Sequence record: NC_041917.1
Reading direction: 5' to 3' (one strand)
Length of the DNA stretch: 64,000 bases
The stretch's first letter is position 1, and each line of letters starts with the position of its first letter. The notes below the pieces were generated by a model. That model saw nothing but the letters and a program-made list of their open reading frames with translations, was not told the DNA's origin and searched no databases. The position numbers and the translations under genes were made by a program. Shown in pieces: positions 1,524 to 20,151 of this stretch.

Positions 1524-1756
1524 AACTTGTAGCAATCGAACGAATTGGTGATTTTTCTATGCCGTACTTGAAATTGTTCAAAGGTTCAGAAGATTCACCA
1601 TCACCTGAAGTAGTACTGGCAGAATTGGAAGCAGTTAATTATCAAATTAATGTATTCTCAGATCAGGATGAAAAATTAGATAAACAAATGACTCGTATTC
1701 TTAACCGTAATGGTTATACGGAGTTTGAACCACCAACGGTCACGATTAGTGACTAA
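1520..1756 (+). CDS. hypothetical protein
   Basis: AGGAG RBS, coupled ORF. Confidence 0.7.
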   Translation: MKLVAIERIGDFSMPYLKLFKGSEDSPSPEVVLAELEAVNYQINVFSDQDEKLDKQMTRILNRNGYTEFEPPTVTISD

Positions 1757-1763
1757 TTAATTT

Positions 1764-1879
1764 GCAGTGATCGTCTAGAGGCTTAGGACACGAAAAAGCG
1801 ATTCTTGGTTAAGAATCTTACGGCATCAATAAACTTTCATTTCACGAACGTAACGCAGGTTCGAATCCTGCTCACTGCA
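1764..1879 (+). tRNA. tRNA-Glu(UUC) interrupted by a 43-nt insertion (1793-1835)
   Basis: Acceptor GCAGTGA/TCACTGC; T-arm GCAGG-TTCGAAT-CCTGC; removing the insert gives CG|TTC-ATTTCAC-GAACG. Confidence 0.85.
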
Positions 1880-1897
1880 CTAATATTGGAGTAATAT

Positions 1898-2200
1898 ATG
1901 AAAAGTATTCTTCTCTTTGAGTACTTCGCAACTGGCGAAGGTTGGCGTACTGTAATCCGCTTCTATAATCAGAATCGTGTTTCTGATGAGGCTGCACTGG
2001 AAACATTAAAATCAGAATTCGATCCATATTTTCATGTAGGATTTGAATTGCATGATATTAGTACTGTCAAGGATAATGCATCCTTAATGCGTACTTTGAA
2101 AGAACATGTTCCAATTTTGTACAATTATGTTATGTTACCAGATGATGCATATCATCCAGTAATTAATGTAAAATATGAAGGTTATGTAAACTATTCATAA
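1898..2200 (+). CDS. hypothetical protein
   Basis: GGAG RBS. Confidence 0.75.
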   Translation: MKSILLFEYFATGEGWRTVIRFYNQNRVSDEAALETLKSEFDPYFHVGFELHDISTVKDNASLMRTLKEHVPILYNYVMLPDDAYHPVINVKYEGYVNYS

Positions 2201-2209
2201 AAATAATTT

Positions 2210-2335
2210 GTGGGGTTAGCTCAGTCTGGTAGAGCAGCGAAAGAAAAAACAATGGAATCTTGAAAAGGATTCTAACAGCATTATATCTTCTACTGTAAAT
2301 TCGCAGGTCGGTGAGTTCAAATCCACCATCCCACA
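2210..2335 (+). tRNA. tRNA-Tyr(GUA)-like gene interrupted by a ~51-nt insertion (2242-2292)
   Basis: Acceptor GTGGGGT/ATCCCAC; D-arm GCTC..GAGC; GCGAA|CTGTAAA-TTCGC after removal; short variable loop and bulged T-stem are atypical. Confidence 0.75.
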
Positions 2336-2408
2336 CAAATTTGTCTTGACATGGTGTATCCTGTGTGTTATATTACTATCATCAATTAAACGAGATAGGA
2401 TTTAAATT

Positions 2409-2681
2409 ATGGACGGGATTGCAATGCGTATTCAAGTCTTACCGAATGGTTTGATTATTGGTCATGTTGTTCCAAAAGAACATCCAGCAAATCGCTGTTA
2501 TAATTTGGAACCGAACCATGTATATGAACTTCAAATTGATCTTACTTATGGTAACGATAAATTGAAAAACATTGGCGAAGCCGATTTTAAAACTTCTGAT
2601 GTTGATCCTCGTGGTTGTAGTATCGACCACTTGATTGCAGTAAGCAGTGGGCGTCATTTAACCGTGAATGATGGGAAATAA
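2409..2681 (+). CDS. hypothetical protein
   Basis: AGGA RBS; TTGACA promoter upstream. Confidence 0.65.
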   Translation: MDGIAMRIQVLPNGLIIGHVVPKEHPANRCYNLEPNHVYELQIDLTYGNDKLKNIGEADFKTSDVDPRGCSIDHLIAVSSGRHLTVNDGK

Positions 2682-2683
2682 AA

Positions 2684-3049
2684 ATGAAAGTATTCATTGA
2701 TGATATTCGTGACCCAAAAAATTACTTGACACCAGAACAGGCTGATGGTATTATTTGGATCAAAGAGTGGTGGTCAGCAAAACGCTTTTTGATTGATCAT
2801 GCTGCTGAAATTGAAGTGATTCATTTTGACCATTACATGGATGAACCAACGTTAACTGGTAAAGATTTATTCTTTATGGTTGCTGGGGATTGTATGTGGG
2901 GTGGAAAAGAAACATGGATTAAACTACAGAAAATTTATTTACATTCTTCTGATGTTGATATGGTTGAAGAACTTGTTGAAGAATATAGTACTGAATTGGC
3001 TGAATCTGGTGTTGAGCTTATTGATAACCATCAAGAAAGGAACTACTAA
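2684..3049 (+). CDS. cyclic-phosphate-processing receiver-like domain protein
   Basis: KVFIDDIRDP ... IHFDHYMD ... GKDLF ... IYLHSS pattern recognised by eye. Confidence 0.6.
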   Translation: MKVFIDDIRDPKNYLTPEQADGIIWIKEWWSAKRFLIDHAAEIEVIHFDHYMDEPTLTGKDLFFMVAGDCMWGGKETWIKLQKIYLHSSDVDMVEELVEEYSTELAESGVELIDNHQERNY

Positions 3050-3406
3050 ATGAAAGTTTATGTAGATGATATTCGTAATCCACAAAACCATCTAAGTTCT
3101 GAACAGGCAGCCGATGTAGTGTGGATTAAAGAATGGTGGGATGCACGTAACTTTATCTTTTATAATAATTTAGAAATTGAAGTGATTCATTTAGATAATT
3201 ATCTAGGTGACCGTACCCACACTGGTGCTGATTTACTTCGAATGATTACATATAGGTTTCGCCGTGGGGAATTCCCTAAGTTGAAACAAATTTATCTTCA
3301 CAGTTCTGATAAAGATATTGTGAATAAACTGTATGACACACATATTGAATGTTGTACAGAAGCTGGTGTTGAATTAATTAAAAATTCACGTCCAAACCGT
3401 AGTTAA
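3050..3406 (+). CDS. cyclic-phosphate-processing receiver-like domain protein (paralogue)
   Basis: KVYVDDIRNP ... IHLDNYLG ... GADLL ... IYLHSS; tandem paralogue of 2684..3049. Confidence 0.6.
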   Translation: MKVYVDDIRNPQNHLSSEQAADVVWIKEWWDARNFIFYNNLEIEVIHLDNYLGDRTHTGADLLRMITYRFRRGEFPKLKQIYLHSSDKDIVNKLYDTHIECCTEAGVELIKNSRPNRS

Positions 3407-3412
3407 ACAAAT

Positions 3413-3537
3413 GGCGAGTTAGCTCAGTTGGTAGAGCACGTAGAAACCCAAGATTCAAGTACTTGAATCTTACAGCAACAATAACTCATACACTTTTAAT
3501 GTCGTGGTCGTTGGTTCGAATCCAACACTCGCCGCCA
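3413..3537 (+). tRNA. tRNA-Lys(UUU) interrupted by a 49-nt insertion (3441-3489)
   Basis: Acceptor GGCGAGT/ACTCGCC plus G-CCA; CG|ACA-CTTTTAA-TGTCG after removal; T-arm GTTGG-TTCGAAT-CCAAC. Confidence 0.9.
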
Positions 3538-3554
3538 AATAATAAGGAGTACAT

Positions 3555-3761
3555 ATGTTCCTTGATGAAATTAAATCTGTTCCATTCCCAAGCTATAAAG
3601 CTTTGGAAAAATCACGTAACGAATCGTCTAAGTCTGTTAATCCAACAACTTATGATCGTTATGAAAAGTACCATTATCCTGCTGGTACAGAATTCCGTTT
3701 AGCAAAAGCTATTGATTCTGTAATTGTAAAAATTAAAAAGGTAATTAACTATGTCGGTTAA
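3555..3761 (+). CDS. hypothetical protein
   Basis: AAGGAG RBS. Confidence 0.7.
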   Translation: MFLDEIKSVPFPSYKALEKSRNESSKSVNPTTYDRYEKYHYPAGTEFRLAKAIDSVIVKIKKVINYVG

Positions 3762-4356
3762 ATTCACACCAGTAGTAACTACATTGAAAAACACACTTGT
3801 TGTTGAATTGGAATACGAGCATGGTGATGCAGATGCAACTACCTTTGAATATGTAAATATTCCAGTACTTCCTGAACAAAAAGAAAGTATTGGTGTGTTA
3901 CTTTCAATGATTGAGCACGGTCTTGAATGTCAAAATGCTGAACGTGATGACTACACTATTGACCCGTTCTTTGTTGATGAAACCATTGATTATGATGATA
4001 ATCAAGGTATTCCATTAGTTGGTGTTGAAGTTCGCTTCAGTTTTGATTATAATTCTCCGAAAGAGAAAGGAACTGTCGTTAGCGTTGACCACGAACAGAA
4101 ATATATCATTATTCGTTCATCTACTGGTGAAGAACACCAATTTGACTTTGATGAAATTGAAGATTGTATTGCTTCATCAACAGGTATGATGGTAATGGAT
4201 GGTGGTGAAATTAGCTTTACATATAATGGTATTAATGTTAACATTGGCAATGTTGGTGATTGTACTGTTGATTGTCAATTTAATGCATCGGGTGGTATTA
4301 ATGCGGTTTATTACTACGATGAAAATGCTATTAAATACAGTGTAACTGAATATTAA
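3751..4356 (+). CDS. acidic hypothetical protein
   Basis: GAGG-like RBS, 201 aa. Confidence 0.75.
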   Translation: MSVKFTPVVTTLKNTLVVELEYEHGDADATTFEYVNIPVLPEQKESIGVLLSMIEHGLECQNAERDDYTIDPFFVDETIDYDDNQGIPLVGVEVRFSFDYNSPKEKGTVVSVDHEQKYIIIRSSTGEEHQFDFDEIEDCIASSTGMMVMDGGEISFTYNGINVNIGNVGDCTVDCQFNASGGINAVYYYDENAIKYSVTEY

Positions 4357-4371
4357 AATTTGCGGGAACGC

Positions 4372-4401
4372 TTGACAAACTGCCAAAGACCCCGCTATAA
4401 T
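4372..4401 (+). promoter_or_regulatory. sigma70-type promoter
   Basis: TTGACA-N18-TATAAT. Confidence 0.7.
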
Positions 4402-4563
4402 AGAGGGGTTCTTTATGAAGCATTATTATGATGTATTAGTGACGGTAGTTGTGTTATTCGGTCTTGCAACTTGTTTGTTTAAAAGTATAATTGTGGCATT
4501 TATTGGAATAGCAATATTCTTTTTAGGATGCCTTGTTGAATATCTTATCAATAGGAACAAAAC

Positions 4564-4905
4564 ATGAAACACTTCTTGGAAGTACTGTTCGTAGCAATTG
4601 CAATTTTGGCTGGTTTATTAGGTCACGTTGGTCTTGCGATTTGGGCAGGTATGTTTGGTGTGATTATGTGGTTTATTATCCCAAATCCAACGTACCAACC
4701 ACAAGTTCCTGTAGTACCAAAAATTAATGGTATTGAAGTGGAATTTAAATATCGTTCAGATGAAGAAGGTAAAACGTTCACCATCGTTGTGCCAAATAAT
4801 GGTGATGAAGAAATTGTTAATGTGGTTAAGTACATTAACAATTTAACAGGTACAGAAACCTCGGCTGAACGTTTAGAGATTTTATCTACTAAGTACTTAA
4901 TTTAA
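4564..4905 (+). CDS. membrane protein
   Basis: AGGAA RBS; N-terminal TM segments. Confidence 0.7.
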   Translation: MKHFLEVLFVAIAILAGLLGHVGLAIWAGMFGVIMWFIIPNPTYQPQVPVVPKINGIEVEFKYRSDEEGKTFTIVVPNNGDEEIVNVVKYINNLTGTETSAERLEILSTKYLI

Positions 4906-4921
4906 GAGTACTTTAATAGTG

Positions 4922-4945
4922 AAAGCCCTTATTAAAGGGCTTTTT
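4922..4945 (+). terminator. intrinsic terminator
   Basis: AAAGCCCTT-ATT-AAAGGGCTTTTT hairpin with T tract. Confidence 0.7.
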
Positions 4946-4949
4946 AATT

Positions 4950-5035
4950 GGGGATATGGCGAAATTGGTAAGACGCACCACACTCAAAATGTGGCGGTTT
5001 AATCCGTGTCGGTTCGACTCCGACTATCCCCACCA
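4950..5035 (+). tRNA. tRNA-Leu(CAA)
   Basis: CCACA-CTCAAAA-TGTGG, long variable arm, CCA end. Confidence 0.95.
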
Positions 5036-5119
5036 AAAAAAAGATTGACAGTGCTACAAATTTTAAGTAAGATAGAGTCATTGAGTTCAGCAAGTTTAAA
5101 AAAATCTTTAAAAAACTGC

Positions 5120-5148
5120 TTGACAAGTGATTACAAATTCGATACTAT
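5120..5148 (+). promoter_or_regulatory. sigma70-type promoter
   Basis: TTGACA-N17-TACTAT. Confidence 0.7.
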
Positions 5149-5234
5149 GTATCACATCGACGGATGTAAAACGTATCTCTTGGTACTCAACGTTGAGTAC
5201 TGTTTTAGAAAATAATATATAAGGGCTTTAAAAA

Positions 5235-5456
5235 ATGGCTAAGAACACTATTACTGATATTGGCGAAGTTGAACGTACTGTGAACTACATCAAGTTCCAG
5301 ATCTCTCAAGCTGACGAACAGCTTGCTCCATTCGCTAACAGCGATAAGCCAAAGATCTGCTATGCACATCTGTTGGATTGGAAAAAACAGTTGCAGTCTG
5401 AACTGTATGAAATCCGTCAGGCTCAGCAGAAAGCACGTCACAACACGCACAAGTAA
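5235..5456 (+). CDS. hypothetical protein
   Basis: AAGGG RBS; downstream hairpin. Confidence 0.7.
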   Translation: MAKNTITDIGEVERTVNYIKFQISQADEQLAPFANSDKPKICYAHLLDWKKQLQSELYEIRQAQQKARHNTHK

Positions 5457-5516
5457 TGAGCCATGCCGCTAACATCGTTAGCGGCGTCTTTTAAGTGATA
5501 AAAAGAGTATAAAAAT

Positions 5517-5759
5517 ATGAAAAGTGCAACTACTTTAAAGAACATGCATACTCGCATTGAGTTACTTAAATCACAACGTGATTTAGCATGGATTGAATGG
5601 CATAAGTTAAATGATTTGGAACAGCGTAACAAAGAGCAAGGTAAAGCATTGTCTCAAACTTTCGCCCTTATCACTAAACTGACATATGAAATTCGCGGTC
5701 TGCAAATCACCTTTGGTGAACTGAAAGAACAAGTCATCAAAGAAATCATTTTGTCTTAA
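5517..5759 (+). CDS. coiled-coil hypothetical protein
   Basis: ORF track. Confidence 0.7.
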   Translation: MKSATTLKNMHTRIELLKSQRDLAWIEWHKLNDLEQRNKEQGKALSQTFALITKLTYEIRGLQITFGELKEQVIKEIILS

Positions 5760-5775
5760 CTAAAATGGGGTTGTT

Positions 5776-6237
5776 ATGGGTGCAATTATTCTGTACAGTA
5801 TTTTAGGTTTTCTCGGTGTATTCACTTTGTATATGTTCGTTGTAACATCTGCAATGGGTACTGAACGTTTAAAAACTTCACAGTACTTTATGTCTTCATT
5901 GAGTTATAGTGAAGAAGCTACAGTAAAAATCAATCTTTTGATTGATAAGTATCAAGCTGGCTTACTTAAAGCTAAGCTTAAATCAAATGTTATAGAATTC
6001 ACCGAAATGGAAGGTAATGCACTGGCTGGTGAGATTTATATTGCAAATAAGTACTTCTCGTATGGTCAGTTGTATCGTTATGGTGCAAATGGAAATACTA
6101 AGTGGCAATGCAATAAACCAGATTTAAAAACTTTCAAGCGTATTATTAAACTTGAAAAACAACTTGATATTACTGATGAAGTTCCAGTACAAAAAAGTAC
6201 TAGTAAGTCATCAGAAGAACAGGTTATTCTGGACTAA
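5776..6237 (+). CDS. membrane-anchored hypothetical protein
   Basis: N-terminal TM helix. Confidence 0.7.
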   Translation: MGAIILYSILGFLGVFTLYMFVVTSAMGTERLKTSQYFMSSLSYSEEATVKINLLIDKYQAGLLKAKLKSNVIEFTEMEGNALAGEIYIANKYFSYGQLYRYGANGNTKWQCNKPDLKTFKRIIKLEKQLDITDEVPVQKSTSKSSEEQVILD

Positions 6238-6273
6238 GGGCAGCAATGCCCTATTTTAATTGAGAGATTTAAT

Positions 6274-6957
6274 ATGAATATCATTGAACGAGCAAAACAT
6301 ATTGTTTCCGTTTCTGAATTTGAAAGTAATGTTAATCCAATAGAAATGAAAAAGATTAAAGCAGTTTGCCCATACGATGAACAATATATTTTACGTATGG
6401 TGGTAAGTACCGATGGTTTGACCTATCACTTACCTATTGAATTACGATGGATGTATCCATTGTATATTGCAGCTTTAAAACATCAAACTGAAGTAATTGG
6501 GATAAAACATCCGTTTTGTTATATTACTGTTCGTCATGGTTTAGTTAAATCAATAACTGATGACGAATGGCACGTTGATGGATTCAGTACTAAAATTGTT
6601 CATGTACCTGAACAGAACTACATTTGGTCTAACAGTATTCCTACCGAATACACCAATGTTTCTGTTAAGTTCCCTGATGATTTTGATTCTAATATTCATA
6701 ATGTGAATCATTACTTACAAAAGTTTGTCCATAATGATGAAGTTCAGCAGTGTAAAGAAAATGTGTTGTATTGTTTAGACCCATATATCTTACATCGTCG
6801 TCCATCATCAAGTACTGGTGAAGTACGTACTTTTGTTCGTATCTCATTTGTTCCAATTGAAATCAATGATGTTAATAACACCCAAAATAAGTTATTACCA
6901 CGTACTTATAACAACGATGGGGTTCAAGTACGAAATAAATTGAGAACGTATGGCTAA
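6274..6957 (+). CDS. 2OG-Fe(II) dioxygenase-like protein
   Basis: WHVDG (HxD) ... LHRRP ... RTFVRISF double-stranded beta-helix pattern. Confidence 0.65.
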   Translation: MNIIERAKHIVSVSEFESNVNPIEMKKIKAVCPYDEQYILRMVVSTDGLTYHLPIELRWMYPLYIAALKHQTEVIGIKHPFCYITVRHGLVKSITDDEWHVDGFSTKIVHVPEQNYIWSNSIPTEYTNVSVKFPDDFDSNIHNVNHYLQKFVHNDEVQQCKENVLYCLDPYILHRRPSSSTGEVRTFVRISFVPIEINDVNNTQNKLLPRTYNNDGVQVRNKLRTYG

Positions 6958-7363
6958 AATTATTTGTGGATTTCCTGGTATAGGTAAGAGTAGTATTAAA
7001 AATATCGGCAAAGTACTTGATTTGGATAGTTCTTTGTATACCAAGAATTCTTTATTTCCTGCTAATTATATTGTTGATATTGTATCTGCAATGGATGAAT
7101 ATGATTATATTTTGGTAAGTACGCATGACGTACTTAGAAAAGAATTACAATCATTGGGTATTAGTTATACTAATGTATATCCAGAGATTGATTTAGGTGA
7201 AGAATACCACGAACGTTATGTTCAACGCGGAAGTCCTGAAAGTTTTATTAATTTTATTGATGAAAATTGGGATGACTTCATATACGAATTGCAGTATGAT
7301 GATTCTGAATATGTTGAACTGGAAAGCGGTCAATTTCTTTCAGATATTATAGCAAATATTTGA
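6950..7363 (+). CDS. P-loop kinase/NTPase
   Basis: Walker A GFPGIGKS near N-terminus, small NMP-kinase-like size. Confidence 0.7.
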   Translation: MAKIICGFPGIGKSSIKNIGKVLDLDSSLYTKNSLFPANYIVDIVSAMDEYDYILVSTHDVLRKELQSLGISYTNVYPEIDLGEEYHERYVQRGSPESFINFIDENWDDFIYELQYDDSEYVELESGQFLSDIIANI

Positions 7364-7389
7364 AACGAAAGAAAAAATTGTGGTATAAT
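7361..7389 (+). promoter_or_regulatory. TGAAAC-N17-TATAAT promoter (RNA-gene class)
   Basis: TGAAAC ... TGGTATAAT; five more copies in the window. Confidence 0.7.
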
Positions 7390-7406
7390 ATAGTACATAA
7401 GGCAAC

Positions 7407-7523
7407 GGAATCTTACAGCAAAAATACTAATTTTTGATGAAAACGAAACGACGAGGTTCGAATCCTCACCCACGAATTGCCTTATTATTAGTGGGAGCAC
7501 GGTGCTGGATAAACAAAGATTCC
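7407..7523 (+). ncRNA. ACAGCA element bracketing a degenerate permuted tRNA (Ile GAU-like)
   Basis: GGAATCTT-ACAGCA ... AAGATTCC; GAGG-TTCGAAT-CCTC precedes CCCAC..GTGGG. Confidence 0.7.
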
Positions 7524-7584
7524 AGAATTTAAGTTAGAAAATTATGAAACAAATCAAAAATTTGTGGTATAATATAAGAAGTAA

Positions 7585-7691
7585 AGCGGGATGGTGATTG
7601 ATGAAAGCTATTATTTGATTCTAGAAAATCATAATAAGTGAGTAAGAGAACAGGGTTCTTAATATCACGAGGGTTCGATCCCCTGTCGCTG
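7585..7691 (+). pseudogene. degenerate Leu(UAG)-like tRNA
   Basis: TGATT-CTAGAA-AATCA hairpin, variable-arm hairpin, AGGG-TTCGAT-CCCT; poor acceptor and D arms. Confidence 0.35.
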
Positions 7692-7706
7692 CACAAAGCA
7701 ACAAAC

Positions 7707-7824
7707 GAAATCTCACAGCAAACAAAACAATTTTTTTCCTTGCATAGAAAAACGGTGGGGTTCGATTCCCCAACATCCAAGTTGCTTTTAGGATGTGTCT
7801 GGAAGGCCGTATGACAAAGATTTC
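7707..7824 (+). ncRNA. ACAGCA element bracketing a degenerate permuted tRNA (Ala UGC-like)
   Basis: GAAATCT-C-ACAGCA ... AGATTTC; CTTGCAT loop, GGGG-TTCGATT-CCCC, ACATCC..GGATGT. Confidence 0.7.
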
Positions 7825-8000
7825 AGTTCCTATCAACTAAAAAGGATAGCATATAATGAGTTCTGAAGAAAATTTAGAATTATTAAATAAAATAATGAAT
7901 GCCATTGCAAATGGTAAATTGAGTGAAACAATGACTGAACTTGGTTACGAAGTAACTAAGAGTACTGATAAAAGTACAGAATGGTCATTAAAACAATAAT

Positions 8001-8074
8001 GTTCTGTTAGACAAATTGGTAAAGTCACCACCCTTTCAAGGTGGGGTTTACGGGTTCGACCCCCGTACAGAACG
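8001..8074 (+). tRNA. tRNA-Glu(UUC)
   Basis: CCACC-CTTTCAA-GGTGG; acceptor GTTCTGT/ACAGAAC. Confidence 0.95.
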
Positions 8075-8079
8075 CTAAA

Positions 8080-8192
8080 GGATTCGCACAGCAACAATAA
8101 AATCTTAAAATTCAATTGGTGAAAACAACCTTGCAGTTCGATTCTGCTTCCACAATGTGTGGATCTGGTGATGGATAGAAAAAACCGAATCC
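8080..8192 (+). ncRNA. ACAGCA element bracketing a highly degenerate permuted tRNA
   Basis: GGATTCG-C-ACAGCA ... AGAAA..CGAATCC; GCAG-TTCGATT-CTGC then TCCAC-AATGT-GTGGA. Confidence 0.65.
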
Positions 8193-8231
8193 TGATTTTA
8201 ATTAAGAAGTACTAAAGAATTTGATACACAC

Positions 8232-8384
8232 GGATTTATACAGCAAACATAATCCTAAAATAAAACATACGATAATGTTACTAACTCGGAATTCGTTCCC
8301 TTCGTTAGTACTTGGCAACTTGGGTACTTAAATAAGTTGTATCACCTCACGTGTATCGGATTAGAGGTGATTATAAATAAATCC
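8232..8384 (+). ncRNA. ACAGCA element with multi-hairpin cargo
   Basis: GGATTTAT-ACAGCA ... ATAAATCC; internal GGAA-TTCG-TTCC, CAACTT/AAGTTG, ATCACCTC/GAGGTGAT. Confidence 0.65.
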
Positions 8385-8392
8385 AGTAACAC

Positions 8393-8418
8393 AAAAGTAC
8401 CTTGAACGGTACTTTTTT
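8393..8418 (+). terminator. intrinsic terminator
   Basis: AAAAGTACC-TTGAAC-GGTACTTTTTT. Confidence 0.7.
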
Positions 8419-8420
8419 AT

Positions 8421-8513
8421 GGTAGGTTGGCAGAGTTTGGCTTATTGCACTTGTCTTGAAAACAAGCGGGGGTTAACAGCCCTCCGAGGGTTCAAATCCC
8501 TCACCTACCTCCA
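8421..8513 (+). tRNA. tRNA-Ser(UGA)
   Basis: CTTGT-CTTGAAA-ACAAG, long variable arm, CCA. Confidence 0.95.
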
Positions 8514-8530
8514 ATACAATAAAGGTGAAC

Positions 8531-8842
8531 ATGATGGATTCAGTTGGTTTAATCGTTGTGTTTTTAGAACAACGTGTTCGTGGTTCTCATGAAATACATT
8601 ATGTAGTACAAGTTACTGAAGAAGGAACTTGTGACGTTCATGTTACGGACTCATGGAGTTTTAAGTCATGGGAAGATTTAAAAGAAACGCATCCTACTTT
8701 CAAAAGTTTGTTATATGAATTTTTTAATTCTTGCAATTGGGCACCTTATGTAAACGAAAAAGAAATTTGGGCTGATGAAGTAATCGGCGGCGAAGGTCTT
8801 TATGATGATTATGATTCACATGTATTAAGTACTGATTTGTAA
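8531..8842 (+). CDS. hypothetical protein
   Basis: AAGGTG RBS. Confidence 0.7.
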   Translation: MMDSVGLIVVFLEQRVRGSHEIHYVVQVTEEGTCDVHVTDSWSFKSWEDLKETHPTFKSLLYEFFNSCNWAPYVNEKEIWADEVIGGEGLYDDYDSHVLSTDL

Positions 8843-8850
8843 AGTTCAAT

Positions 8851-8925
8851 GGGGTACGTAGCTCAGTCTGGTAGAGCAGCCATGCGAAAACGGTGTGTCG
8901 GTGGTTCGAATCCACTCGCTCCCCA
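8851..8925 (+). pseudogene. pseudo-tRNA (Phe GAA-like, damaged anticodon arm)
   Basis: Good D and T arms; acceptor has 2 mismatches; anticodon stem poorly paired around GCGAAAA. Confidence 0.5.
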
Positions 8926-8929
8926 CTAA

Positions 8930-8986
8930 GGAATCTAGCAGCAACCATAACCCAATCAAACTTTTAATTTGACAATTATGGATTCC
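8930..8986 (+). ncRNA. ACAGCA element carrying an isolated Lys(UUU) anticodon stem-loop
   Basis: GGAATCT-A-GCAGCA ... TCAAA-CTTTTAA-TTTGA ... GGATTCC. Confidence 0.75.
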
Positions 8987-9164
8987 CGTTATTTTTAAGG
9001 ATGTGATATGTCTAAAGAACAAGATGATTTTGAAAAAGAATATCTTATAAGTAAGCGTATTGATCCAAAAGCAACATTTTATATAAAATCTCGTAGAAAG
9101 AAAAATGGTTATAGAACTCGTGAATTGAATAATAAATTTCAAGAATTTCTTAAACGATTTAAAG

Positions 9165-9256
9165 GGTAAAGTGGCAGAGCGGCTGAATGCAACCGCTTGG
9201 AAAGCGGTCAGGTTAGGTAATCCCTAGCCTCGTAGGTTCAAATCCTATCTTTACCG
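9165..9256 (+). tRNA. tRNA-Ser(GGA)
   Basis: ACCGC-TTGGAAA-GCGGT, long variable arm. Confidence 0.9.
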
Positions 9257-9308
9257 CAAAGTAATAACTCCTTATTAAAGTGAAGTACAAAAACAACAGG
9301 AGAATATT

Positions 9309-9665
9309 ATGTACGAGAAAGATGATGGTCCATTAACTGATGAACAAATTCGTATCATCCGTGAAATGAATAGCCATCTGAATCAAACTGATTTAGAAAT
9401 TGATTTAAATTGGTTGAACAGTGATATACAAGGAAATGCAATGTATTACGACTATTATTACAAAGTTGACGGTGACCTTCGTCGTTATACCAGTAATCAA
9501 GAGTTAACGGATGCGGAAATCAATAATATTTTTGGTGCAAGCAAACAAGTAGTAATGCTTACTCCAATTGTATTTGAACGTGACGTAACTACTGAAGACA
9601 AATCTGGTAAAAAGATTAAAAGTACTGAAAAAGTACATGTTGGCTTCTTAGGATATGTGGAATAA
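9309..9665 (+). CDS. hypothetical protein
   Basis: AGGAG RBS. Confidence 0.7.
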   Translation: MYEKDDGPLTDEQIRIIREMNSHLNQTDLEIDLNWLNSDIQGNAMYYDYYYKVDGDLRRYTSNQELTDAEINNIFGASKQVVMLTPIVFERDVTTEDKSGKKIKSTEKVHVGFLGYVE

Positions 9666-9667
9666 AA

Positions 9668-10354
9668 ATGTCAAAAAAGACTGATAAAGAAGTAAAAGAT
9701 ACAAAAGAAAAGTACACTGTTGTTAAACACGGCTCACTAACACTAGTGAATACACCAACAGTAAAAACTTTCTATATGAATGGTTCTATTGATCATCCTA
9801 CATTAACTAAGTTCCAAAAGTTCTTAGAAGATACATGTACGGAAAATAATAAAATTGATACCGAAGAAACTGAACGCAAAGAAAAGGATGAATTTAAAAA
9901 GATTCATGATCCTGAATCTAAGCCAGAGTTTGTTCCTGCTAAACGTAAAGTTGAGCGTATCAATCTGGTTATCAATAGTGGTGGTGGTTTAGTTGCAGTA
10001 ATGCTAGAAGTTGTAGCACTAATGAAAACTTCACCAATTCCAATTGATACCTACTGTTTTGGTTCTGCAATGAGTGCAGCTTTCTTTATCTTCTTACATG
10101 GCAAACGCCGTTTTGTTGGTGAAGGTGCCTCATTTATGACACATAGCATTGGTGCTATGGCATGGGATAATGTACCAAACATGACAATTCGTATGGAGTA
10201 CTTGGTTAAACAAAACGAGTACGCACAACAGGAAATTGCTAAACGTACTGGAATTCCTCTTGAAAAATTAAAAGAGAAAGAACATCTCGATTGGTACTTG
10301 ACTGCTGAAGAAGCGTTAGATGTTAAAATCGGTGAATATTTGATCCGAGATTAA
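9668..10354 (+). CDS. clpP: ClpP-like serine protease
   Basis: INSGGG, AMSAA (catalytic Ser), MTHS (His), DWYLTAEEA. Confidence 0.85.
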   Translation: MSKKTDKEVKDTKEKYTVVKHGSLTLVNTPTVKTFYMNGSIDHPTLTKFQKFLEDTCTENNKIDTEETERKEKDEFKKIHDPESKPEFVPAKRKVERINLVINSGGGLVAVMLEVVALMKTSPIPIDTYCFGSAMSAAFFIFLHGKRRFVGEGASFMTHSIGAMAWDNVPNMTIRMEYLVKQNEYAQQEIAKRTGIPLEKLKEKEHLDWYLTAEEALDVKIGEYLIRD

Positions 10355-10400
10355 ATATAAATTCTGGATTCGAAAGAATCCTTTTTTAAGTGAGATGATT

Positions 10401-10625
10401 ATGGACAATCAACACAAACATATTAAAGGGTATCGTGACCTTTCACAAAAAGAAGTGGATGCGATGAATGAGATTAAACAACTGGCTGCCACCATTGGAG
10501 AGTTGATAGAAAAACTTGAAAGTACTGAATCAGTAGATAAACGTTGGCTTGCAATTGCAAAGACGGATTTACAAAAAGGATTCATGTCAGCAGTACGAAG
10601 TGTGGCTAAACCAGATTCCTTCTAA
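10401..10625 (+). CDS. acb2: anti-CBASS nucleotide sponge Acb2 (T4 Vs.4-like)
   Basis: MDNQHKHIKGYRDLSQ ... RWLAIAKTDLQKGFMSAVRSVAKPDSF closely follows the Acb2/Vs.4 signature. Confidence 0.9.
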   Translation: MDNQHKHIKGYRDLSQKEVDAMNEIKQLAATIGELIEKLESTESVDKRWLAIAKTDLQKGFMSAVRSVAKPDSF

Positions 10626-10634
10626 GGAACAAAG

Positions 10635-11015
10635 ATGTATACAACGGTTAATCATGCTGATATAATTGATGATATTATAACTGAAATACTTGAAATTTAT
10701 ACATGTCGAGTTGAAATTTATAAAGATGGTCATTTATTCACTCAGTACGGGTATAATACTAAACATAATGTGAATTATCATATAAATGTAAAGTACTATA
10801 ATGATAATCCAAGTAATGGTGATAAAGCGAATAGCTTAATGGTAGAATTTAAATTTACCAATAGAGTTCCGAAGGGACTAAAAAATCATTACAAGTTATC
10901 TATACCTGAAATAACAAGTCTTACAGAAGAACGGCATTTTCAATTAATGTTTATCACTGATGATATGTATTTGGATTATGAAGTTATAAATAAATTACGT
11001 ACACATATTGTGTAA
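10635..11015 (+). CDS. hypothetical protein (EExxFQ family)
   Basis: EERHFQL motif. Confidence 0.7.
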   Translation: MYTTVNHADIIDDIITEILEIYTCRVEIYKDGHLFTQYGYNTKHNVNYHINVKYYNDNPSNGDKANSLMVEFKFTNRVPKGLKNHYKLSIPEITSLTEERHFQLMFITDDMYLDYEVINKLRTHIV

Positions 11016-11023
11016 AAAAGTTT

Positions 11024-11077
11024 TAGAATCTAACAGCAATCAAAACTCATTGGATATATGAAAAAAGATAGATTCTA
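11024..11077 (+). ncRNA. minimal ACAGCA element
   Basis: TAGAATCTA-ACAGCA ... TCAT-TGGATAT-ATGA ... TAGATTCTA. Confidence 0.75.
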
Positions 11078-11083
11078 GTATTT

Positions 11084-11156
11084 GGGAATATAATTCAGTT
11101 GGTAGAATGCTCGACCGATAATCGAGTCGCCGCTGGTTCGAGTCCAGCTATTCCCA
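11084..11156 (+). tRNA. tRNA-Ile(GAU)
   Basis: CTCGA-CCGATAA-TCGAG (C33 rather than U33). Confidence 0.9.
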
Positions 11157-11255
11157 CGAAGTAGTTCAGTACTGAAAAATGTACAGTGAAATTATTCAAC
11201 ACTATAGGTAGCACTTTGAATGAATCAGTAAGCCTATAAGTAACTACAATAAATT

Positions 11256-11384
11256 TGGAATTCAACAGCAATTCACTTACTAAAAACAGCTACCTCACGG
11301 TTTGTAGGTTCAAGTCCTACCTTGTACTTTCGAGTACATGTGGTGAAAATGGTAAACACGGCTGTCCAAAAGAAATGAATTCCA
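11256..11384 (+). tRNA. circularly permuted tRNA-Leu (probably UAA) inside an ACAGCA element
   Basis: 3' half (ACAGC, variable arm, T-arm, CTTGTAC) precedes TTTCGA linker and 5' half (GTACATG, D-arm, GCTGT). Confidence 0.85.
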
Positions 11385-11436
11385 GTATTAATTAAGACAT
11401 AAATATTCTTATACACTTTTTTGTAAGGATATAATT

Positions 11437-12036
11437 ATGGAAATGAAAAAGTTGATGGAAGATATTTCTGCCATCATGGAAGGACAACTACCTGGTTATT
11501 ATTATCATGGAAGTTCTGCCCCAATATCAAATTTTAGTGATGAGTTTGTTGGTAGAGGAAATGATGAATACGGTCCGGGAATATATTTTAGTTCAGTTCC
11601 AAATACTTCTATAGGTTATGCAAAAGATGGCGGTTCTAATGGAATGGTATATCAGTGCGAAATCAATTTAAGAAAAGAACTATCTAAAAAAACTAGAGTT
11701 AATAAAGCAGTACTATTAAAATTAATGCAAAATACACCTGATGAAGATGCATATACTAACTGGAATGAAAATAAAAATGTTGCTTATAGAACAGCATTAC
11801 AGGGTTATGTAGATGAAGGTAATATGTATGATGCGTTAATGGGTGTTTGGTACGATTGGTATAGAGAATATCCTGTTCAATTCGTGCGTTCACTAGTACA
11901 GTTAGGATATGATGGATACATATATACTTTTGCAAGCGGTGAACGTTTTATTATAGTATATAATCCAGCAAGTATAAAAGTTGTAAACACATTCAATCCA
12001 GAAGAAGCTATGCAGAAACTGATTGGAAGTGAATAA
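11437..12036 (+). CDS. ADP-ribosyltransferase-like protein
   Basis: YHGS ... GPGIYFS ... ERFIIVYNP pattern of ART-fold (ART-PolyVal-like) domains. Confidence 0.55.
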   Translation: MEMKKLMEDISAIMEGQLPGYYYHGSSAPISNFSDEFVGRGNDEYGPGIYFSSVPNTSIGYAKDGGSNGMVYQCEINLRKELSKKTRVNKAVLLKLMQNTPDEDAYTNWNENKNVAYRTALQGYVDEGNMYDALMGVWYDWYREYPVQFVRSLVQLGYDGYIYTFASGERFIIVYNPASIKVVNTFNPEEAMQKLIGSE

Positions 12037-12043
12037 TAAGATT

Positions 12044-12163
12044 TGGAATTCAACAGCAAATCATTCTAAACCCGTAGCATGTCGTAGGTTCAAGTCCTAC
12101 CAGTACTATCGAGTACTGTAGCTCAGTTGGTAGAGCAGCCACCTTAAAAAGAAATGAATTCCA
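12044..12163 (+). tRNA. circularly permuted class I tRNA inside an ACAGCA element (anticodon uncertain)
   Basis: GTAGC-ATGTC-T-arm-CAGTACT-ATCG-AGTACTG-TA-GCTCAGTTGGTAGAGC-A-GCCAC. Confidence 0.8.
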
Positions 12164-12194
12164 GTATTAATTAAAACAACATGAGTATAAATCA

Positions 12195-12644
12195 ATGTCT
12201 GATAAGCATCAATTTAAAGTAAACATCGGTGATTGGTCACAAGATGGTCATAATCAATATGATGTTTTAGTTCTTAACAGTACTAAACCAGTAGATGAAG
12301 TACAAAAAGCATTTAAAAAAGCTGCAACAGATTTACATTTACTAGTAAATGGTCGTTTTCTAATTGCAGATGAATTTGAAGATTGTAGTCTATCTGAAGA
12401 CCATGCAGAAGTTCTTAAAAATGCAGGTGTAAAATTTGATGATTTAGTGTATAATGATGGCGATGATGAAGAACCAAATTATATTATTGAAGGTTCAAGT
12501 GATATGACTATCCTAGTGATGCGTATCGCCCAACTTGAATTGGACTTTGAATTTGAAATTACGAATGATGCAATTCCGAACTTTAACGGGTTCTGGACAG
12601 AAGAACAAATGCCATCAATCGGATATGGTTTGTATAACATATAA
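12195..12644 (+). CDS. hypothetical protein
   Basis: ORF track. Confidence 0.75.
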   Translation: MSDKHQFKVNIGDWSQDGHNQYDVLVLNSTKPVDEVQKAFKKAATDLHLLVNGRFLIADEFEDCSLSEDHAEVLKNAGVKFDDLVYNDGDDEEPNYIIEGSSDMTILVMRIAQLELDFEFEITNDAIPNFNGFWTEEQMPSIGYGLYNI

Positions 12645-12653
12645 AACAAGTTT

Positions 12654-12718
12654 TGGAATCTAGCAGCACCCATAAAATGAAATCAACTGTTAATTGAAAA
12701 ATTCAAAAATGGATTCCA
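12654..12718 (+). ncRNA. ACAGCA element carrying an isolated Asn(GUU) anticodon stem-loop
   Basis: TGGAATCT-A-GCAGCA ... TCAA-CTGTTAA-TTGA ... GGATTCCA. Confidence 0.7.
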
Positions 12719-12738
12719 GCCTATTTCGGAGTAAAAAA

Positions 12739-13008
12739 ATGTATTATGCTCGATTAGAATATCCAAACAATGGATATGAGATTGAAAGAATACGTCTTAA
12801 AGCCTTAGATCGCAAAAAGTACTATCCAGTAGTTTCGATTGATATTGGTAGTTCAAGTACTCGCATATATCTTGAAGGTGATAAGAATGCATATAATAGT
12901 GTGAACTTTGAATTCTATACCAAACATGGTGATGAATATATTCTTGAAGATATTTTCGAAGACCCTGATTTAAACCCGTACTTGGATGATGATGACGAAG
13001 AATATTAA
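12739..13008 (+). CDS. hypothetical protein
   Basis: ATG 12739 after GGAG. Confidence 0.7.
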   Translation: MYYARLEYPNNGYEIERIRLKALDRKKYYPVVSIDIGSSSTRIYLEGDKNAYNSVNFEFYTKHGDEYILEDIFEDPDLNPYLDDDDEEY

Positions 13009-13076
13009 ATAAAAATACCACAAATAAATGAAACGCTTCAAAAAATTGTGGTATAATATAAGTAAGTTAAACAAGA

Positions 13077-13148
13077 GGTTATGTCGTATAAAGGTTATTA
13101 CGGAGAGCTGTTAACTCTTTTATCTTGGTTCGATTCCAAGCATGACCG
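13077..13148 (+). tRNA. tRNA-Asn(GUU)
   Basis: GAGAG-CTGTTAA-CTCTT; acceptor GGTTATG/CATGACC; atypical D-arm. Confidence 0.85.
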
Positions 13149-13265
13149 CAAAAAGTTAAATTCACCAGGCGTACTATGGTGGGAAAGGTATCATGATACC
13201 AATTCGAATAGAATACGTATTAAACCCTTGAACGGTTTTCTGTAAACTCAATTTAACAAATAATT

Positions 13266-13320
13266 AAGAATCTAACAGCAATAAAAACTCATTCGATTAT
13301 ATGAAAAAAGATAGATTCTT
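13266..13320 (+). ncRNA. minimal ACAGCA element
   Basis: AAGAATCTA-ACAGCA ... TAGATTCTT; near copy of 11024-11077. Confidence 0.75.
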
Positions 13321-13325
13321 GTTTT

Positions 13326-13398
13326 AGGAGTATGGTGTAATTGGTTAGCACACGTGACTTTGACTCACGTAGTTGAGGTTCGAGTCCTTATATTCCTG
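13326..13398 (+). tRNA. tRNA-Gln(UUG)
   Basis: CGTGA-CTTTGAC-TCACG. Confidence 0.95.
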
Positions 13399-13549
13399 CA
13401 AATTAAAATTTCATTCATTTCCTTGTGTGAAACAAGCTGGTATGATTCCCCTTGCTTGTAAAATTATCGAACGGGAACCGCGTTGCACCTGTACAGGTCA
13501 GATTGTAAAGATCGAGTATGTACAGTACTGAGAGCGGCAGTACAACAAA

Positions 13550-13631
13550 GCGGGATTAGCTCAGTGGTAGAGCACTTGCCTTCCAAGCAAGAGGCGAATA
13601 GGTTCCATCGGTTCGAATCCGATATTCCGCT
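13550..13631 (+). tRNA. tRNA-Gly(UCC) with 15-nt variable region
   Basis: CTTGC-CTTCCAA-GCAAG; U73. Confidence 0.9.
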
Positions 13632-13749
13632 CAAACTAAACAAACAATAAGGTGATTTTTATGCTATAGAATCCTAGTACTGGTCCTCCTAAAGAATTTA
13701 ATTCTGATATAAACAACTCAAAATTAAACTACTATAGGAAGAACATACC

Positions 13750-14076
13750 ATGTTAAACAAAGAACAATATATTACTGTAAAAAATACTTGGAAAGCTGTA
13801 AAAGAACATAACATTTTTGATCATGTGATCTATAATGTACTTCGTGGAGTCCCATCTGATACTGGTTTCGCACCAATTACAGACAGGGGTCGTTTACACG
13901 CTAACAACAATGACCCGTTCAATATGTACAATTTCGCAGTTCGTGAAATTCATTATGAATTAAACGAAAAACGGTACAATTACGAAAAGACAGTAAAGCA
14001 TTATTCTGAACTATTCGGCATTGAATTTACAAAAGAACTCATCGAAGAAATTGTTTCTTTGATTAAAGTTAAATAA
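13750..14076 (+). CDS. hypothetical protein
   Basis: AGGAAG RBS. Confidence 0.7.
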   Translation: MLNKEQYITVKNTWKAVKEHNIFDHVIYNVLRGVPSDTGFAPITDRGRLHANNNDPFNMYNFAVREIHYELNEKRYNYEKTVKHYSELFGIEFTKELIEEIVSLIKVK

Positions 14077-14084
14077 CAGAATTA

Positions 14085-14141
14085 AAGAATCCAGCAGCAA
14101 CTAAAACTCATTCGCTTAATATGAAAAAGAAACGGATTCTT
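14085..14141 (+). ncRNA. minimal ACAGCA element
   Basis: AAGAATCC-A-GCAGCA ... AGAAA-C-GGATTCTT. Confidence 0.75.
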
Positions 14142-14161
14142 GTTTTTATTTGGAAAACGAT

Positions 14162-20064: not shown

Positions 20065-20151
20065 GGGTCGTTCACTCAGTTGGTTAGAGTACCGGACTTT
20101 TAATCCGGCGGGTATATCCCATCGAAGGTTCGAATCCTTCACGGCCTACCA
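20065..20151 (+). tRNA. tRNA-Lys(UUU) with long variable arm
   Basis: CCGGA-CTTTTAA-TCCGG then GGG-TATAT-CCC arm; CCA. Confidence 0.9.

Follow-up and report, generated by a model that had tools for sequence, protein, structure and literature searches.

A conserved helix-and-box RNA module that interrupts tRNA genes and encloses tRNA-like cargoes in Serratia phage BF and its relatives

In bacterial and phage tRNA genes, group I introns interrupt the anticodon loop and have a ribozyme core (P3–P8) that spans about 200 nt or more. The bulge-helix-bulge (BHB) motif, required by the split and permuted tRNA genes known from Cyanidioschyzon merolae and from archaea, has two 3-nt bulges with a 4-bp helix between them, formed by exon and intron sequence at both junctions. 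HDV (hepatitis delta virus)-like and hammerhead ribozymes occur beside phage tRNAs, and some phage tRNAs evade tRNA-cutting defences, such as T5 tRNA-Lys against PARIS, a phage tRNA-Thr against P2 OLD, and T5 tRNA-Tyr against Retron-Eco7. Here we describe an RNA module, consisting of a helix followed by an ACAGCA-type box, that occurs 14 times in the tRNA region of Serratia phage BF, an Eneladusvirus and Rak2-like jumbo phage. The whole stretch analysed (the window, 64,000 nt) is identical to the last 64 kb of the 357-kb BF genome (NC_041917), with window position 1 corresponding to record position 293155, and contains 21 tRNAs as counted by ARAGORN and 22 as counted by Rfam.

Two other families of small RNA are relevant to this module. 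One is YrlA, a group of tRNA-mimicking Y RNAs in which the two ends pair as a protein-binding stem (PMC4201824). Class I RNAs have been reported as unique to dictyostelids and are bound by the protein Rnp1A (PMC7919456).

A one-stranded family of helix-and-box modules

All 14 module sites predicted earlier from this sequence are present, and every one lies on the + strand, as do all of the units described below. They align without gaps in a 14-nt frame in which 8 nt of one helix strand (strand B) are followed by the box R-C-R-G-C-A, a frame that fits each of the predicted variants ACAGCA, GCAGCA and ACGGCA. The pattern RAWTYNNRCRGCA has 16 matches in the window compared to 1.02 +/- 0.97 in dinucleotide shuffles, and none of 100 shuffles reaches 16; 14 of the 16 matches are the units, all within 1.8–14.1 kb. 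In three copies (E1–E3; boxes starting at 1820, 2275 and 3472) the partner strand A lies 4–8 nt upstream of strand B and the two form a closed hairpin. In the other 11, strand A is 30–131 nt downstream, such that the strands are swapped around a cargo; their boxes start at 7415, 7715, 8088, 8240 and 8938 (E4–E8), and at 11033, 11265, 12053, 12663, 13275 and 14094 (E9–E14). The BF record annotates only E3, as a RefSeq tRNA pseudogene, leaving E1, E2 and the 11 strand-swapped units unannotated, and there is no annotation beneath the strand-swapped units that we checked in the records of relatives.

We examined helix covariation in a set of 80 distinct copies from BF, from five complete relatives (Yersinia phage fHe-Yen9-04, Erwinia phage Kaldavass, Cronobacter phage GAP32, Pectobacterium phage CBB and Xanthomonas phage XbC2), and from IMG/VR contigs. 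The 10-bp helix is paired at 87% of positions versus 72% in shuffles, and there are 116 cells with double-sided changes versus 35 (0/500 shuffles in both cases); as a control, sliding the partner strand reduces pairing to 14–52%. Compensatory changes are seen at six of the eight core pairs, with stems such as GGATTCG/CGAATCC, GGAATTCA/TGAATTCC, GGATTTAT/ATAAATCC and GTAATTT/AAATTAC, and the shuffles and covariation together rule out a chance origin of the family. The original prediction described a stem of 7–9 bp that changes in sequence while keeping its pairing. The stem and its compensatory changes are confirmed, but it spans 8 bp, often extended to 10 by TT/AG, and is not free to vary, with the pairs A5-U28 and U7-A26 being invariant. 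Within the box C12, G14, C15 and A16 are invariant, and the base that follows is A in 84% of 88 family copies. The AGAAA or AGATA thought to precede the other strand is not a fixed sequence but an A-run, the 8 nt before strand A being 57–93% A.

The minimum-free-energy fold includes the helix in all 13 units tested, with the box unpaired in most. The common architecture is a helix leading through an asymmetric internal loop to an inner helix, which is the first stem of the cargo; RCAGCAA plus 1–18 nt forms one side of the loop and the A-run the other. We refer to the outer helix with its box and A-run as the handle. By inspection, neither a kink-turn (GA/GA beside the helix), an Hfq (ARN)n tract, an RNase P-type stem+RCCA mimic nor an H/ACA-like stem+ACA fits all copies. 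Base pairs between box and cargo can be drawn in single units (CAGCA/TGCTG in E4, ACAGC/GCTGT in E10 and ACAG/CUGU in E2), but we reject them as a general feature, and covariation among E10 orthologs favours the anticodon stem instead. ACAG of the box is also the complement of CUGU in the anticodon loops of E2 (Tyr; 2275–2296) and E12 (Asn; 12663–12695); RNAfold predicts this pair in E2, and it is not general to the other units.

Each of the five complete relatives has about 12–17 copies, nearly all on the + strand of the syntenic region, and a scan of IMG/VR identified more in many contigs of 355–371 kb plus a few shorter ones. A scan of 596 Gb (gigabases) of cellular genomes gave 58 scattered single matches in unrelated taxa, none of them in Enterobacteria, which is at or below our own chance estimate of about 270 (assuming uniform base composition). 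The units adjoin tRNAs or sit between a stop codon and the next ribosome-binding site (RBS), and some have strong promoters of their own.

We considered whether these repeats could act at the DNA level, as MITE-like (miniature inverted-repeat transposable element) inverted repeats, a recombination site or ordinary terminators. The 8–10 bp inverted repeats around cargoes of variable size and the variation in unit content among relatives are compatible with this, as is a terminator-like hairpin at 10366–10387 (GGATTCGAAAGAATCC followed by six T) that has the handle stem sequence without the ACAGCA box. However, every copy is on one strand with the box on one side only, the repeats covary rather than keeping a single sequence, the inner cargo helices covary too, and a T-run is missing from most units. 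Moreover, G-U (G-T) pairs occur in the helix only in the + strand sense, and the helix is therefore a structure of the RNA. We regard a DNA-level element as very improbable.

Rfam searches at gathering thresholds gave tRNA matches only and no family for the module, in keeping with its prediction as a distinct element; at permissive thresholds there was no ribozyme, riboswitch or intron family, and only partial matches to YrlA and Class I RNAs. Nor did we find the module described in the literature on permuted phage tRNAs, phage YrlA, jumbo-phage tRNA-like RNAs, or decoys and insertions. We conclude that the module family is real and conserved and that, within Rfam 15 and the literature searched, it is undescribed.

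Interrupted tRNA genes

E1 is an interrupted tRNA-Glu(UUC) gene (1764–1879) with a 43-nt module (1793–1835) between nt 28 and 29, composed of strand A (1800–1806), a loop (1807–1810), strand B (1811–1817) and the box ACGGCA (1820–1825). E2 (2211–2336) is a Tyr(GUA)-like tRNA gene in which a 51-nt module (2242–2292; box ACAGCA, 2275–2280) separates nt 31 and 32, and its fold retains the hairpin. E3 (3413–3537) is a tRNA-Lys(UUU) gene with an encoded CCA and a 49-nt module (3441–3489; box ACAGCA, 3472–3477) at 28/29. The junctions were fixed by reading the anticodon stems, and the handle lies in the stem at 28/29, not in the loop, in two of the three tRNAs. ARAGORN recognises none of the undeleted sequences, but in silico removal of 1793–1835, 2242–2292 and 3441–3489 yields a canonical tRNA-Glu(ttc), a tRNA-Tyr(gta) and a tRNA-Lys(ttt) with encoded CCA, respectively, bearing out the prediction that three hairpin copies are inserted in tRNA anticodon arms. 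E3 matches the Rfam tRNA model at 48.6 bits with its insertion in place.

Conservation extends to the exons. The split stem 29–31/39–41 of E3 covaries, being ACA/TGT in BF and AGC/GCT in GAP32 and CBB, with CCA/TGG as a further variant among interrupted tRNAs, and orthologs of E1 keep the insertion site in all five relatives. The distance from the box to the 3' exon is 8–13 nt. BF has intact Glu(UUC), Lys(UUU) and Tyr(GUA) genes as well, so E1–E3 duplicate existing isoacceptors. Their anticodons turn over quickly, since the loops differ between phages that are 95% identical: in fHe-Yen9-04 the Lys loop CTTTTAA of E3 is replaced by the GAU-containing ATGATAA (L002 14168–14288), and the Glu loop ATTTCAC of E1 by ATTCAAC, which has an opal-suppressor-like UCA anticodon (L002 12335–12448).

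We looked among the relatives for a precise intron-less allele that would fix the exon junctions and found none, the syntenic tRNAs not being orthologous. One BF gene, at 8852–8924, has lost the module through an imprecise deletion. It is annotated by RefSeq as tRNA-Ser (Rfam tRNA, 36 bits) and its anticodon arm has a 3-bp stem and 10-nt loop (GCC-ATGCGAAAAC-GGT); the orthologous genes of GAP32, CBB, XbC2 and Kaldavass measure 119–127 nt. Those of GAP32 and XbC2 (and of Kaldavass by annotation) have a handle hairpin at 28/29 together with a Lys arm, which in BF sits within the next unit, E8; in the CBB ortholog the loop is degenerate. Other over-long tRNAs are of a different kind. The tRNA-Gly(UCC) at 13550–13632 and tRNA-Lys(UUU) at 20065–20151 have an extra 9–13-nt arm in the variable region, unlike the handle insertion, and 109–110-nt 'tRNAs' in relatives, annotated as Arg and Val (L003 4818–4926; L005 8653–8762), have another long insertion or arm and no handle.

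One explanation for E1–E3 is that of a true intron, and the original prediction proposed a minimal splicing and circularisation system. In such a system the module would be excised from E1–E3, and from the strand-swapped units as permuted pre-tRNAs, by an endonuclease or by self-cleavage, with the exon ends held by the anticodon stem and sealed by Pnkp together with RNA ligase 1 or a second ligase. The canonical tRNAs rebuilt by module removal and the compensatory changes in the split stem agree with this, and excision at 28/29 would leave a nicked duplex. CBB and GAP32 encode RNA ligase 1 (RnlA), Pnkp, a second small RNA ligase and a PIN-PhoH protein (PMC5259590). BF encodes Pnkp, and with these enzymes cut-and-ligate chemistry is available to the phages. 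On the other hand, the junction nucleotides are not conserved, the box-to-exon distance varies, and intact isoacceptors duplicate the interrupted genes. The element is, as predicted, neither a group I nor a BHB intron: Intron_gpI gives no match even at E <= 5, the insertions are only 43–51 nt long, with two of three in the stem at 28/29, and by inspection no BHB pairing can be drawn at the junctions of E1–E3 or of their orthologs.

Strand-swapped units and their cargoes

The 11 end-clamping copies comprise six with large cargoes and five with small hairpins; as predicted, they bracket tRNA-like bodies, lone anticodon-like stem-loops or small hairpins. Three of the six large cargoes (E5, E10 and E11) fold as tRNA-like cloverleaves, all without a canonical anticodon loop. 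Their order is anticodon-stem 3' strand, variable region, T arm and acceptor 3' strand, followed by a short linker, acceptor 5' strand, D arm and anticodon-stem 5' strand, and compensatory changes are present in both anticodon and acceptor stems.

E5 (7695–7826; strand B 7707–7714, box 7715–7720, strand A 7817–7824) has an anticodon-like hairpin, a T arm and a 6-bp acceptor that covaries (GGATGT/ACATCC, GGTTGT/ACAACC, GGCTGT/GCAGCC). E10 (11255–11385; strand B 11257–11264, box 11265–11270, strand A 11376–11383) mimics a class-II-like tRNA, having a long variable arm, and its acceptor ends in a 6-nt closing loop; its fold has z = -2.4, and its anticodon stem covaries (GCTGT/ACAGC versus GCTAT/ATAGC). 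E11 (12043–12164; strand B 12045–12052, box 12053–12058, strand A 12155–12162) is a tRNA mimic with canonical D and T arms and a 7-bp acceptor closed by ATCG, with z = -3.8 and covariation at two pairs of the anticodon stem. In the Kaldavass and XbC2 orthologs of E11 the acceptor strands abut with a zero-length loop (CAGTACTAGTACTG) and there is no discriminator base, and the CBB ortholog (L005 24230–24500) has an insert of about 140 nt in the acceptor-closing loop.

The other large units are less like tRNA. E4 (7399–7525; strand B 7407–7414, box 7415–7420, strand A 7516–7523) contains a T arm and a 5-bp acceptor-like stem, and is preceded by its own extended -10 promoter (7360–7389). E6 (8078–8194; strand B 8080–8087, box 8088–8093, strand A 8186–8192) starts a few nucleotides past the 3' end of tRNA-Glu (8001–8075) and contains a T arm and an acceptor-like hairpin with a 3-nt closing loop; its helix covaries between phages (AGGATTCG/CGAATCCT versus AAGAATCG/CGATTCTT). 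E7 (8223–8386; strand B 8232–8239, box 8240–8245, strand A 8377–8384) has a conserved cargo of 131 nt. In E4, E5 and E7 an additional covarying helix joins the 5' leader to the closing loop of the acceptor-like stem, making a pseudoknot with the handle: 7399–7405 with 7477–7483 in E4 (AAGGCAA/TTGCCTT in BF, AAGGCAG/CTGCCTT in Kaldavass), 7695–7702 with 7781–7788 in E5, and 8223–8229 with 8351–8357 in E7 (GATACAC/GTGTATC in BF, TAGCAC/GTGCTA in CBB).

Several features lie close to these units. Near-identical extended -10 promoters (TTGTGGTATAAT) at 7378–7389, 7563–7573 and 13047–13057 drive E4, an unannotated RNA plus E5, and tRNA-Asn. The unannotated stretch, of about 105 nt (7585–7695), lies after an extended -10 promoter (7544–7573) and just before E5; it holds a T-arm-like GAGGGTTCGATCCCCT, gives only weak matches to tmRNA (transfer-messenger RNA) and permuted tmRNA, and is perhaps a further small RNA of tRNA-like type. 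In BF and relatives, strand A of the tRNA-like units is followed by a conserved motif, (A/T)G(T/A)(A/T)TTAATTAA(G/A) (11384–11397, 12163–12176 and 8193–8207 in BF), which could be an end signal or a promoter element. The open reading frame (ORF) at 11437–12036 (gp467), between E10 and E11, encodes an ART-PolyVal-type ADP-ribosyltransferase (Pfam, 45 bits) and has homologs at the same place in GAP32 and CBB.

To ask what the large cargoes would look like as tRNAs, every rotation and junction of the swapped units was put through ARAGORN. Un-permuted E5, E10 and E11 give cloverleaves, but the anticodon call shifts with the junction chosen; a 7-nt anticodon loop of canonical form, with U33, appears in none of the rotations, and ARAGORN calls neither E4 nor E6 a tRNA in any of them. 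We therefore reject the swapped units as real decoding tRNAs. The description of these units as permuted tRNAs also fares poorly given that some lack a discriminator base, some have acceptor stems of only 5–6 bp, and one has the acceptor-loop insert of about 140 nt. A spliced product would be canonical for E1–E3, whereas for the swapped units U33 is absent, the anticodon is junction-dependent and the discriminator is sometimes missing.

The mini units, five in BF and 46 distinct ones across the family, have as cargo a hairpin of 4–5 bp, usually with a 7-nt loop. E8 (8928–8988; strand B 8930–8937, box GCAGCA 8938–8943, strand A 8979–8986) lies 4 nt past the degenerate tRNA at 8852–8924 and contains TCAAA-CTTTTAA-TTTGA, a Lys(UUU) anticodon stem-loop. 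E9 (11023–11078; strand B 11025–11032, box 11033–11038, strand A 11069–11076) ends 5 nt upstream of tRNA-Ile (11084), and its hairpin TCAT-TGGATAT-ATGA (fold z = -2.1) has a stem that covaries in relatives (TTCT/AGAA, TTTT/AAAA). E12 (12653–12719; strand B 12655–12662, box GCAGCA 12663–12668, strand A 12710–12717), placed between a stop codon and the next RBS, has the same cargo in all relatives, including TCAA-CTGTTAA-TTGA with an Asn(GUU) anticodon loop. E13 (13265–13321; strand B 13267–13274, box 13275–13280, strand A 13312–13319) contains the hairpin TCAT-TCGATTAT-ATGA and ends 5 nt upstream of tRNA-Gln (13326), and E14 (14084–14142; strand B 14086–14093, box GCAGCA 14094–14099, strand A 14133–14140) lies between a stop codon (14074–14076) and the next ORF (14162). 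Four classes of mini-cargo can be distinguished: UCAU-(U/C)GGAUAU-AUGA, with a covarying stem; UCAA-CUGUUAA-UUGA, with the Asn loop, in every phage; UCAAA-CUUUUAA-UUUGA, with the Lys loop, of which variants exist; and UUCA-AUUGG-UGAA. Two of the five BF mini units have exact Lys or Asn anticodon loops.

These cargoes bear on the intron explanation. If the swapped units were processed as precursors they would pass through a circular or two-piece intermediate opened by RNase P and 3' trimming, with very small circles or released anticodon arms as the products of the mini units. The strand swap is indeed the geometry of permuted tRNA genes, and there is a processing precedent in the closed-acceptor YrlA of M. 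smegmatis, which is cut by RNase P and receives CCA in vivo, as YrlA members with 7-bp acceptor stems can be (PMC4201824). But five units have no tRNA body, E4 and E6 are not tRNA-shaped, the remaining 'tRNAs' have no unique canonical anticodon loop, the discriminator base is missing in two E11 orthologs, and the topology is that of a YrlA Y RNA, which is a tRNA mimic and no tRNA precursor. The predicted geometry, one module in hairpin and swapped topologies, is right, while splicing or circularisation is weakened for the swapped units; as a mechanism it is possible but unsupported, and for the system as a whole we consider an intron doubtful, though worth keeping in view.

A further explanation is that a small self-cleaving ribozyme or an endoribonuclease site punctuates polycistronic tRNA and mRNA transcripts; cutting beside the box would set the ends of tRNAs and small RNAs, in the manner of the HDV-like and hammerhead ribozymes near phage tRNAs. 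The module is a compact one, with two helices on either side of an internal loop and some 11 nucleotides that are invariant or nearly so, and units flank tRNAs (E6, E8, E9 and E13) or lie between cistrons (E12 and E14). However, a cut within the anticodon stem would destroy the perfect tRNAs of E1–E3, and E4 has a dedicated promoter and does not need 5' processing. Searches of 1700–14300 and of its sub-regions gave no match to hammerhead, hairpin, twister, twister-sister, pistol, hatchet, HDV-like or hovlinc ribozymes to E = 5–10. The cargo is itself conserved and structured, which argues that the RNA product matters beyond the cut. We think a ribozyme or cleavage site unlikely.

Possible roles and comparison with known systems

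Three defence systems act on the tRNA region into which the handle is inserted, or on the same tRNA identities. P2 OLD frees the anticodon arm by cutting tRNA at two points, between nt 28 and 29 and after nt 40, and the damage is beyond repair by phage ligases (PMC12445682); PARIS AriB cuts tRNA-Lys(UUU) between 40 and 41 (PMC11464382); and Retron-Eco7 depletes tRNA-Tyr (PMC11555353). The 28/29 handle site in the Glu and Lys copies is the bond cut by P2 OLD, and the anticodons on the cargoes include those for Lys, Tyr, Asn and Glu. We take this overlap to be a coincidence worth testing, not proof.

Our preferred interpretation, which we hold tentatively, is that the module acts as a sequence-specific handle, a tag on tRNA mimics and anticodon arms that are used in the conflict with tRNA-cutting defences. 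The handle consists of the 8–10 bp helix, with strand B running straight into single-stranded RCAGCA-A and an A-run before strand A. A partner dedicated to it would recognise it, in the simplest case a protein of phage or host; sequence-specific recognition is suggested because the box and two helix pairs are invariant and the rest is free, and the Ro-binding stem on Y RNAs is an analogue for such a protein-bound element. In the 11 strand-swapped units the handle would close the 5' and 3' ends of small RNAs transcribed from tRNA operons and probably released by tRNA-processing enzymes acting on the abutting tRNAs, with a tRNA body (E5, E10 and E11), a T-arm body (E4 and E6), a larger RNA (E7) or an anticodon-arm-like hairpin (the five mini units) as cargo; in the redundant Glu, Lys and Tyr-like tRNAs it would form a side arm on the 5' side of the anticodon arm. 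The tagged bodies and arms may serve as decoys, baits or repair scaffolds against nucleases that cut the anticodon arm.

This interpretation is consistent with the use of one handle on unrelated cargoes in both topologies, with tRNA-shaped cargo that has no decoding loop (E5, E10 and E11), with anticodon-arm cargo (CUUUUAA for Lys, CUGUUAA for Asn), and with the redundancy of the interrupted tRNAs and rapid change of their anticodon loops. The cargo topology matches that of YrlA Y RNAs, which are a precedent for a handle, as are the Rnp1A-bound Class I RNAs with their like design. The 28/29 insertion site, the placement of units beside tRNAs or between cistrons, and the spread of the family among the relatives, with no excess over chance in cellular genomes, also agree with it. 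Other observations weigh against it. A tRNA that keeps a 43–51-nt side arm in its anticodon stem should not be functional on the ribosome, and an excised intron fits better with the perfect exons of E1–E3 and the encoded CCA of E3. The decoy role is drawn from the anticodon identities carried and from the coincidence at 28/29, and Pfam searches of ten neighbouring ORFs gave ART-PolyVal, ClpP and methyltransferase matches and no partner protein.

A more elaborate proposal combines both chemistries. A handle that shares its motif with the core of Class I RNAs, by descent, transfer or convergence on a shared partner, could drive RNA cutting and joining 5' of the anticodon arm, so that interrupted tRNAs are spliced, swapped and mini units supply tRNA bodies and Lys, Asn and other arms, and Pnkp and RNA ligases join these arms onto tRNAs amputated at 28/29 and 40/41 by Toprim nucleases such as OLD and PARIS. 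Such arm replacement would mend damage that ordinary phage tRNA repair cannot fix; we consider it improbable.

Phage tRNA arrays are now seen as counter-defence tools, and here they hide an RNA family, conserved and present in many copies, in which one handle is joined to tRNA bodies or to bare anticodon arms; none of the records examined annotates it. Neither the BF record nor those that we checked for the relatives include the 11 strand-swapped units, whether tRNA-like or mini, and the handle family accounts for several 'pseudo', 'undetermined' or over-long tRNAs in these genomes. To our knowledge the family includes the first bacterial-virus tRNA genes with an anticodon stem interrupted by a 43–51-nt module that is not a group I intron, and the interruption falls exactly at the bond cut by an anticodon-arm-amputating nuclease. 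If the handle binds protein, it would define a new Y-RNA-like phage ribonucleoprotein; if the module is excised, it would be a new minimal tRNA intron with a permuted-tRNA pathway in bacteria. The function of Class I RNAs is a 20-year-old open question, and the likeness of the module to them offers a tractable phage/E. coli-type system for the function of the ACAGCAA motif.

The defence-evading phage tRNAs likewise belong to the large tRNA arrays of virulent phages and share the Lys(UUU) and Tyr(GUA) identities, but they are normal tRNAs whose anticodon stems carry point changes, and have no inserted module, permuted form or bare arm. The large strand-swapped units share with permuted tRNA genes a 3' half upstream of the 5' half, termini that pair and a linker joining the acceptor ends, and differ in having junctions without a BHB and cargo without canonical anticodon loops; we know of no splicing endonuclease in these phages or their hosts.

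The likeness to YrlA is closer. We know of no YrlA inserted in a real tRNA or with a bare anticodon arm as cargo, but in both RNAs the 5' and 3' ends pair around a circularly permuted tRNA-like module (T arm, closed acceptor and D arm), and multiple copies and occurrence in phages are common to both. E5, E10 and E11 have this YrlA-like module inside the terminal stem and give cloverleaves when un-permuted. E11 matches the YrlA model (RF02553) at 40.3 bits, below the gathering score of 69, over 12077–12139, which covers the tRNA-like module only (model positions 24–84) and leaves positions 1–23 and 85–114 unmatched. The Ro-binding GNCGAAN0-1G motif is absent from the phage units, which have the helix and RCAGCAA in its place, and no TROVE/Ro60 gene is annotated in the 64-kb window, beside the units or elsewhere.

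The handle itself is most like Class I RNAs. Matches to the Class I model (RF01414) were 24.3 bits for E5 and 20.2 and 18.2 bits for two GAP32 mini units, all below the gathering score of 41.5; the GAP32 matches run end to end over the whole 56-position model with correct boundaries, one BF match had its 3' stem misplaced, and E12–E14 gave no match at E <= 10. The authors of the Class I study used a working cut-off of 25 bits, and the published sequences read GTTGAC-CTTACAGCAA-variable-AAGAAAACC(YYC)-GTCAAC-TG (PMC7919456). Phage mini units read TTAGAATCTA-ACAGCAA-variable-GAAAAAAGA-TAGATTCTAG, and in the five from BF (56–67 nt) the stem is followed by CU(U/A)-ACAGCAA, as in the Class I layout of stem and box. 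In Class I RNAs the box CCUUACAGCAA is directly 3' of the 5' stem strand, with (C)U(U/A)ACAGCAA its phage counterpart; GAP32 unit 24616 reads ACAGCAAUUAAAAC, which is the Rfam Class I consensus ACAGCAAUuaAAac, and the Lys-type flank TAGAAACCC of the phage units echoes Class I AAGAAACCC. Also shared are a short covarying terminal stem, a variable interior that is often a small hairpin, an A-run (AAGAAAAC) before the 3' stem strand, a 2-nt 3' overhang ending in G, a total length of about 42–65 nt, and many copies per genome. The Dictyostelium RNAs differ in having a 6-bp stem with CUU unpaired, where the phage stem is 8–10 bp and includes CUU or CUA, a C-rich tract before the 3' strand, and the eukaryotic promoter element DUSE (Dictyostelium upstream sequence element), where phage units have sigma-70-type promoters or lie inside operons. 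By our own rough estimate, a shared 7–10-mer across all of Rfam is not very unlikely by itself; the resemblance is notable because the context is shared as well. The phage handle resembles the core of Class I RNAs, with which homology and convergence are alike compatible.

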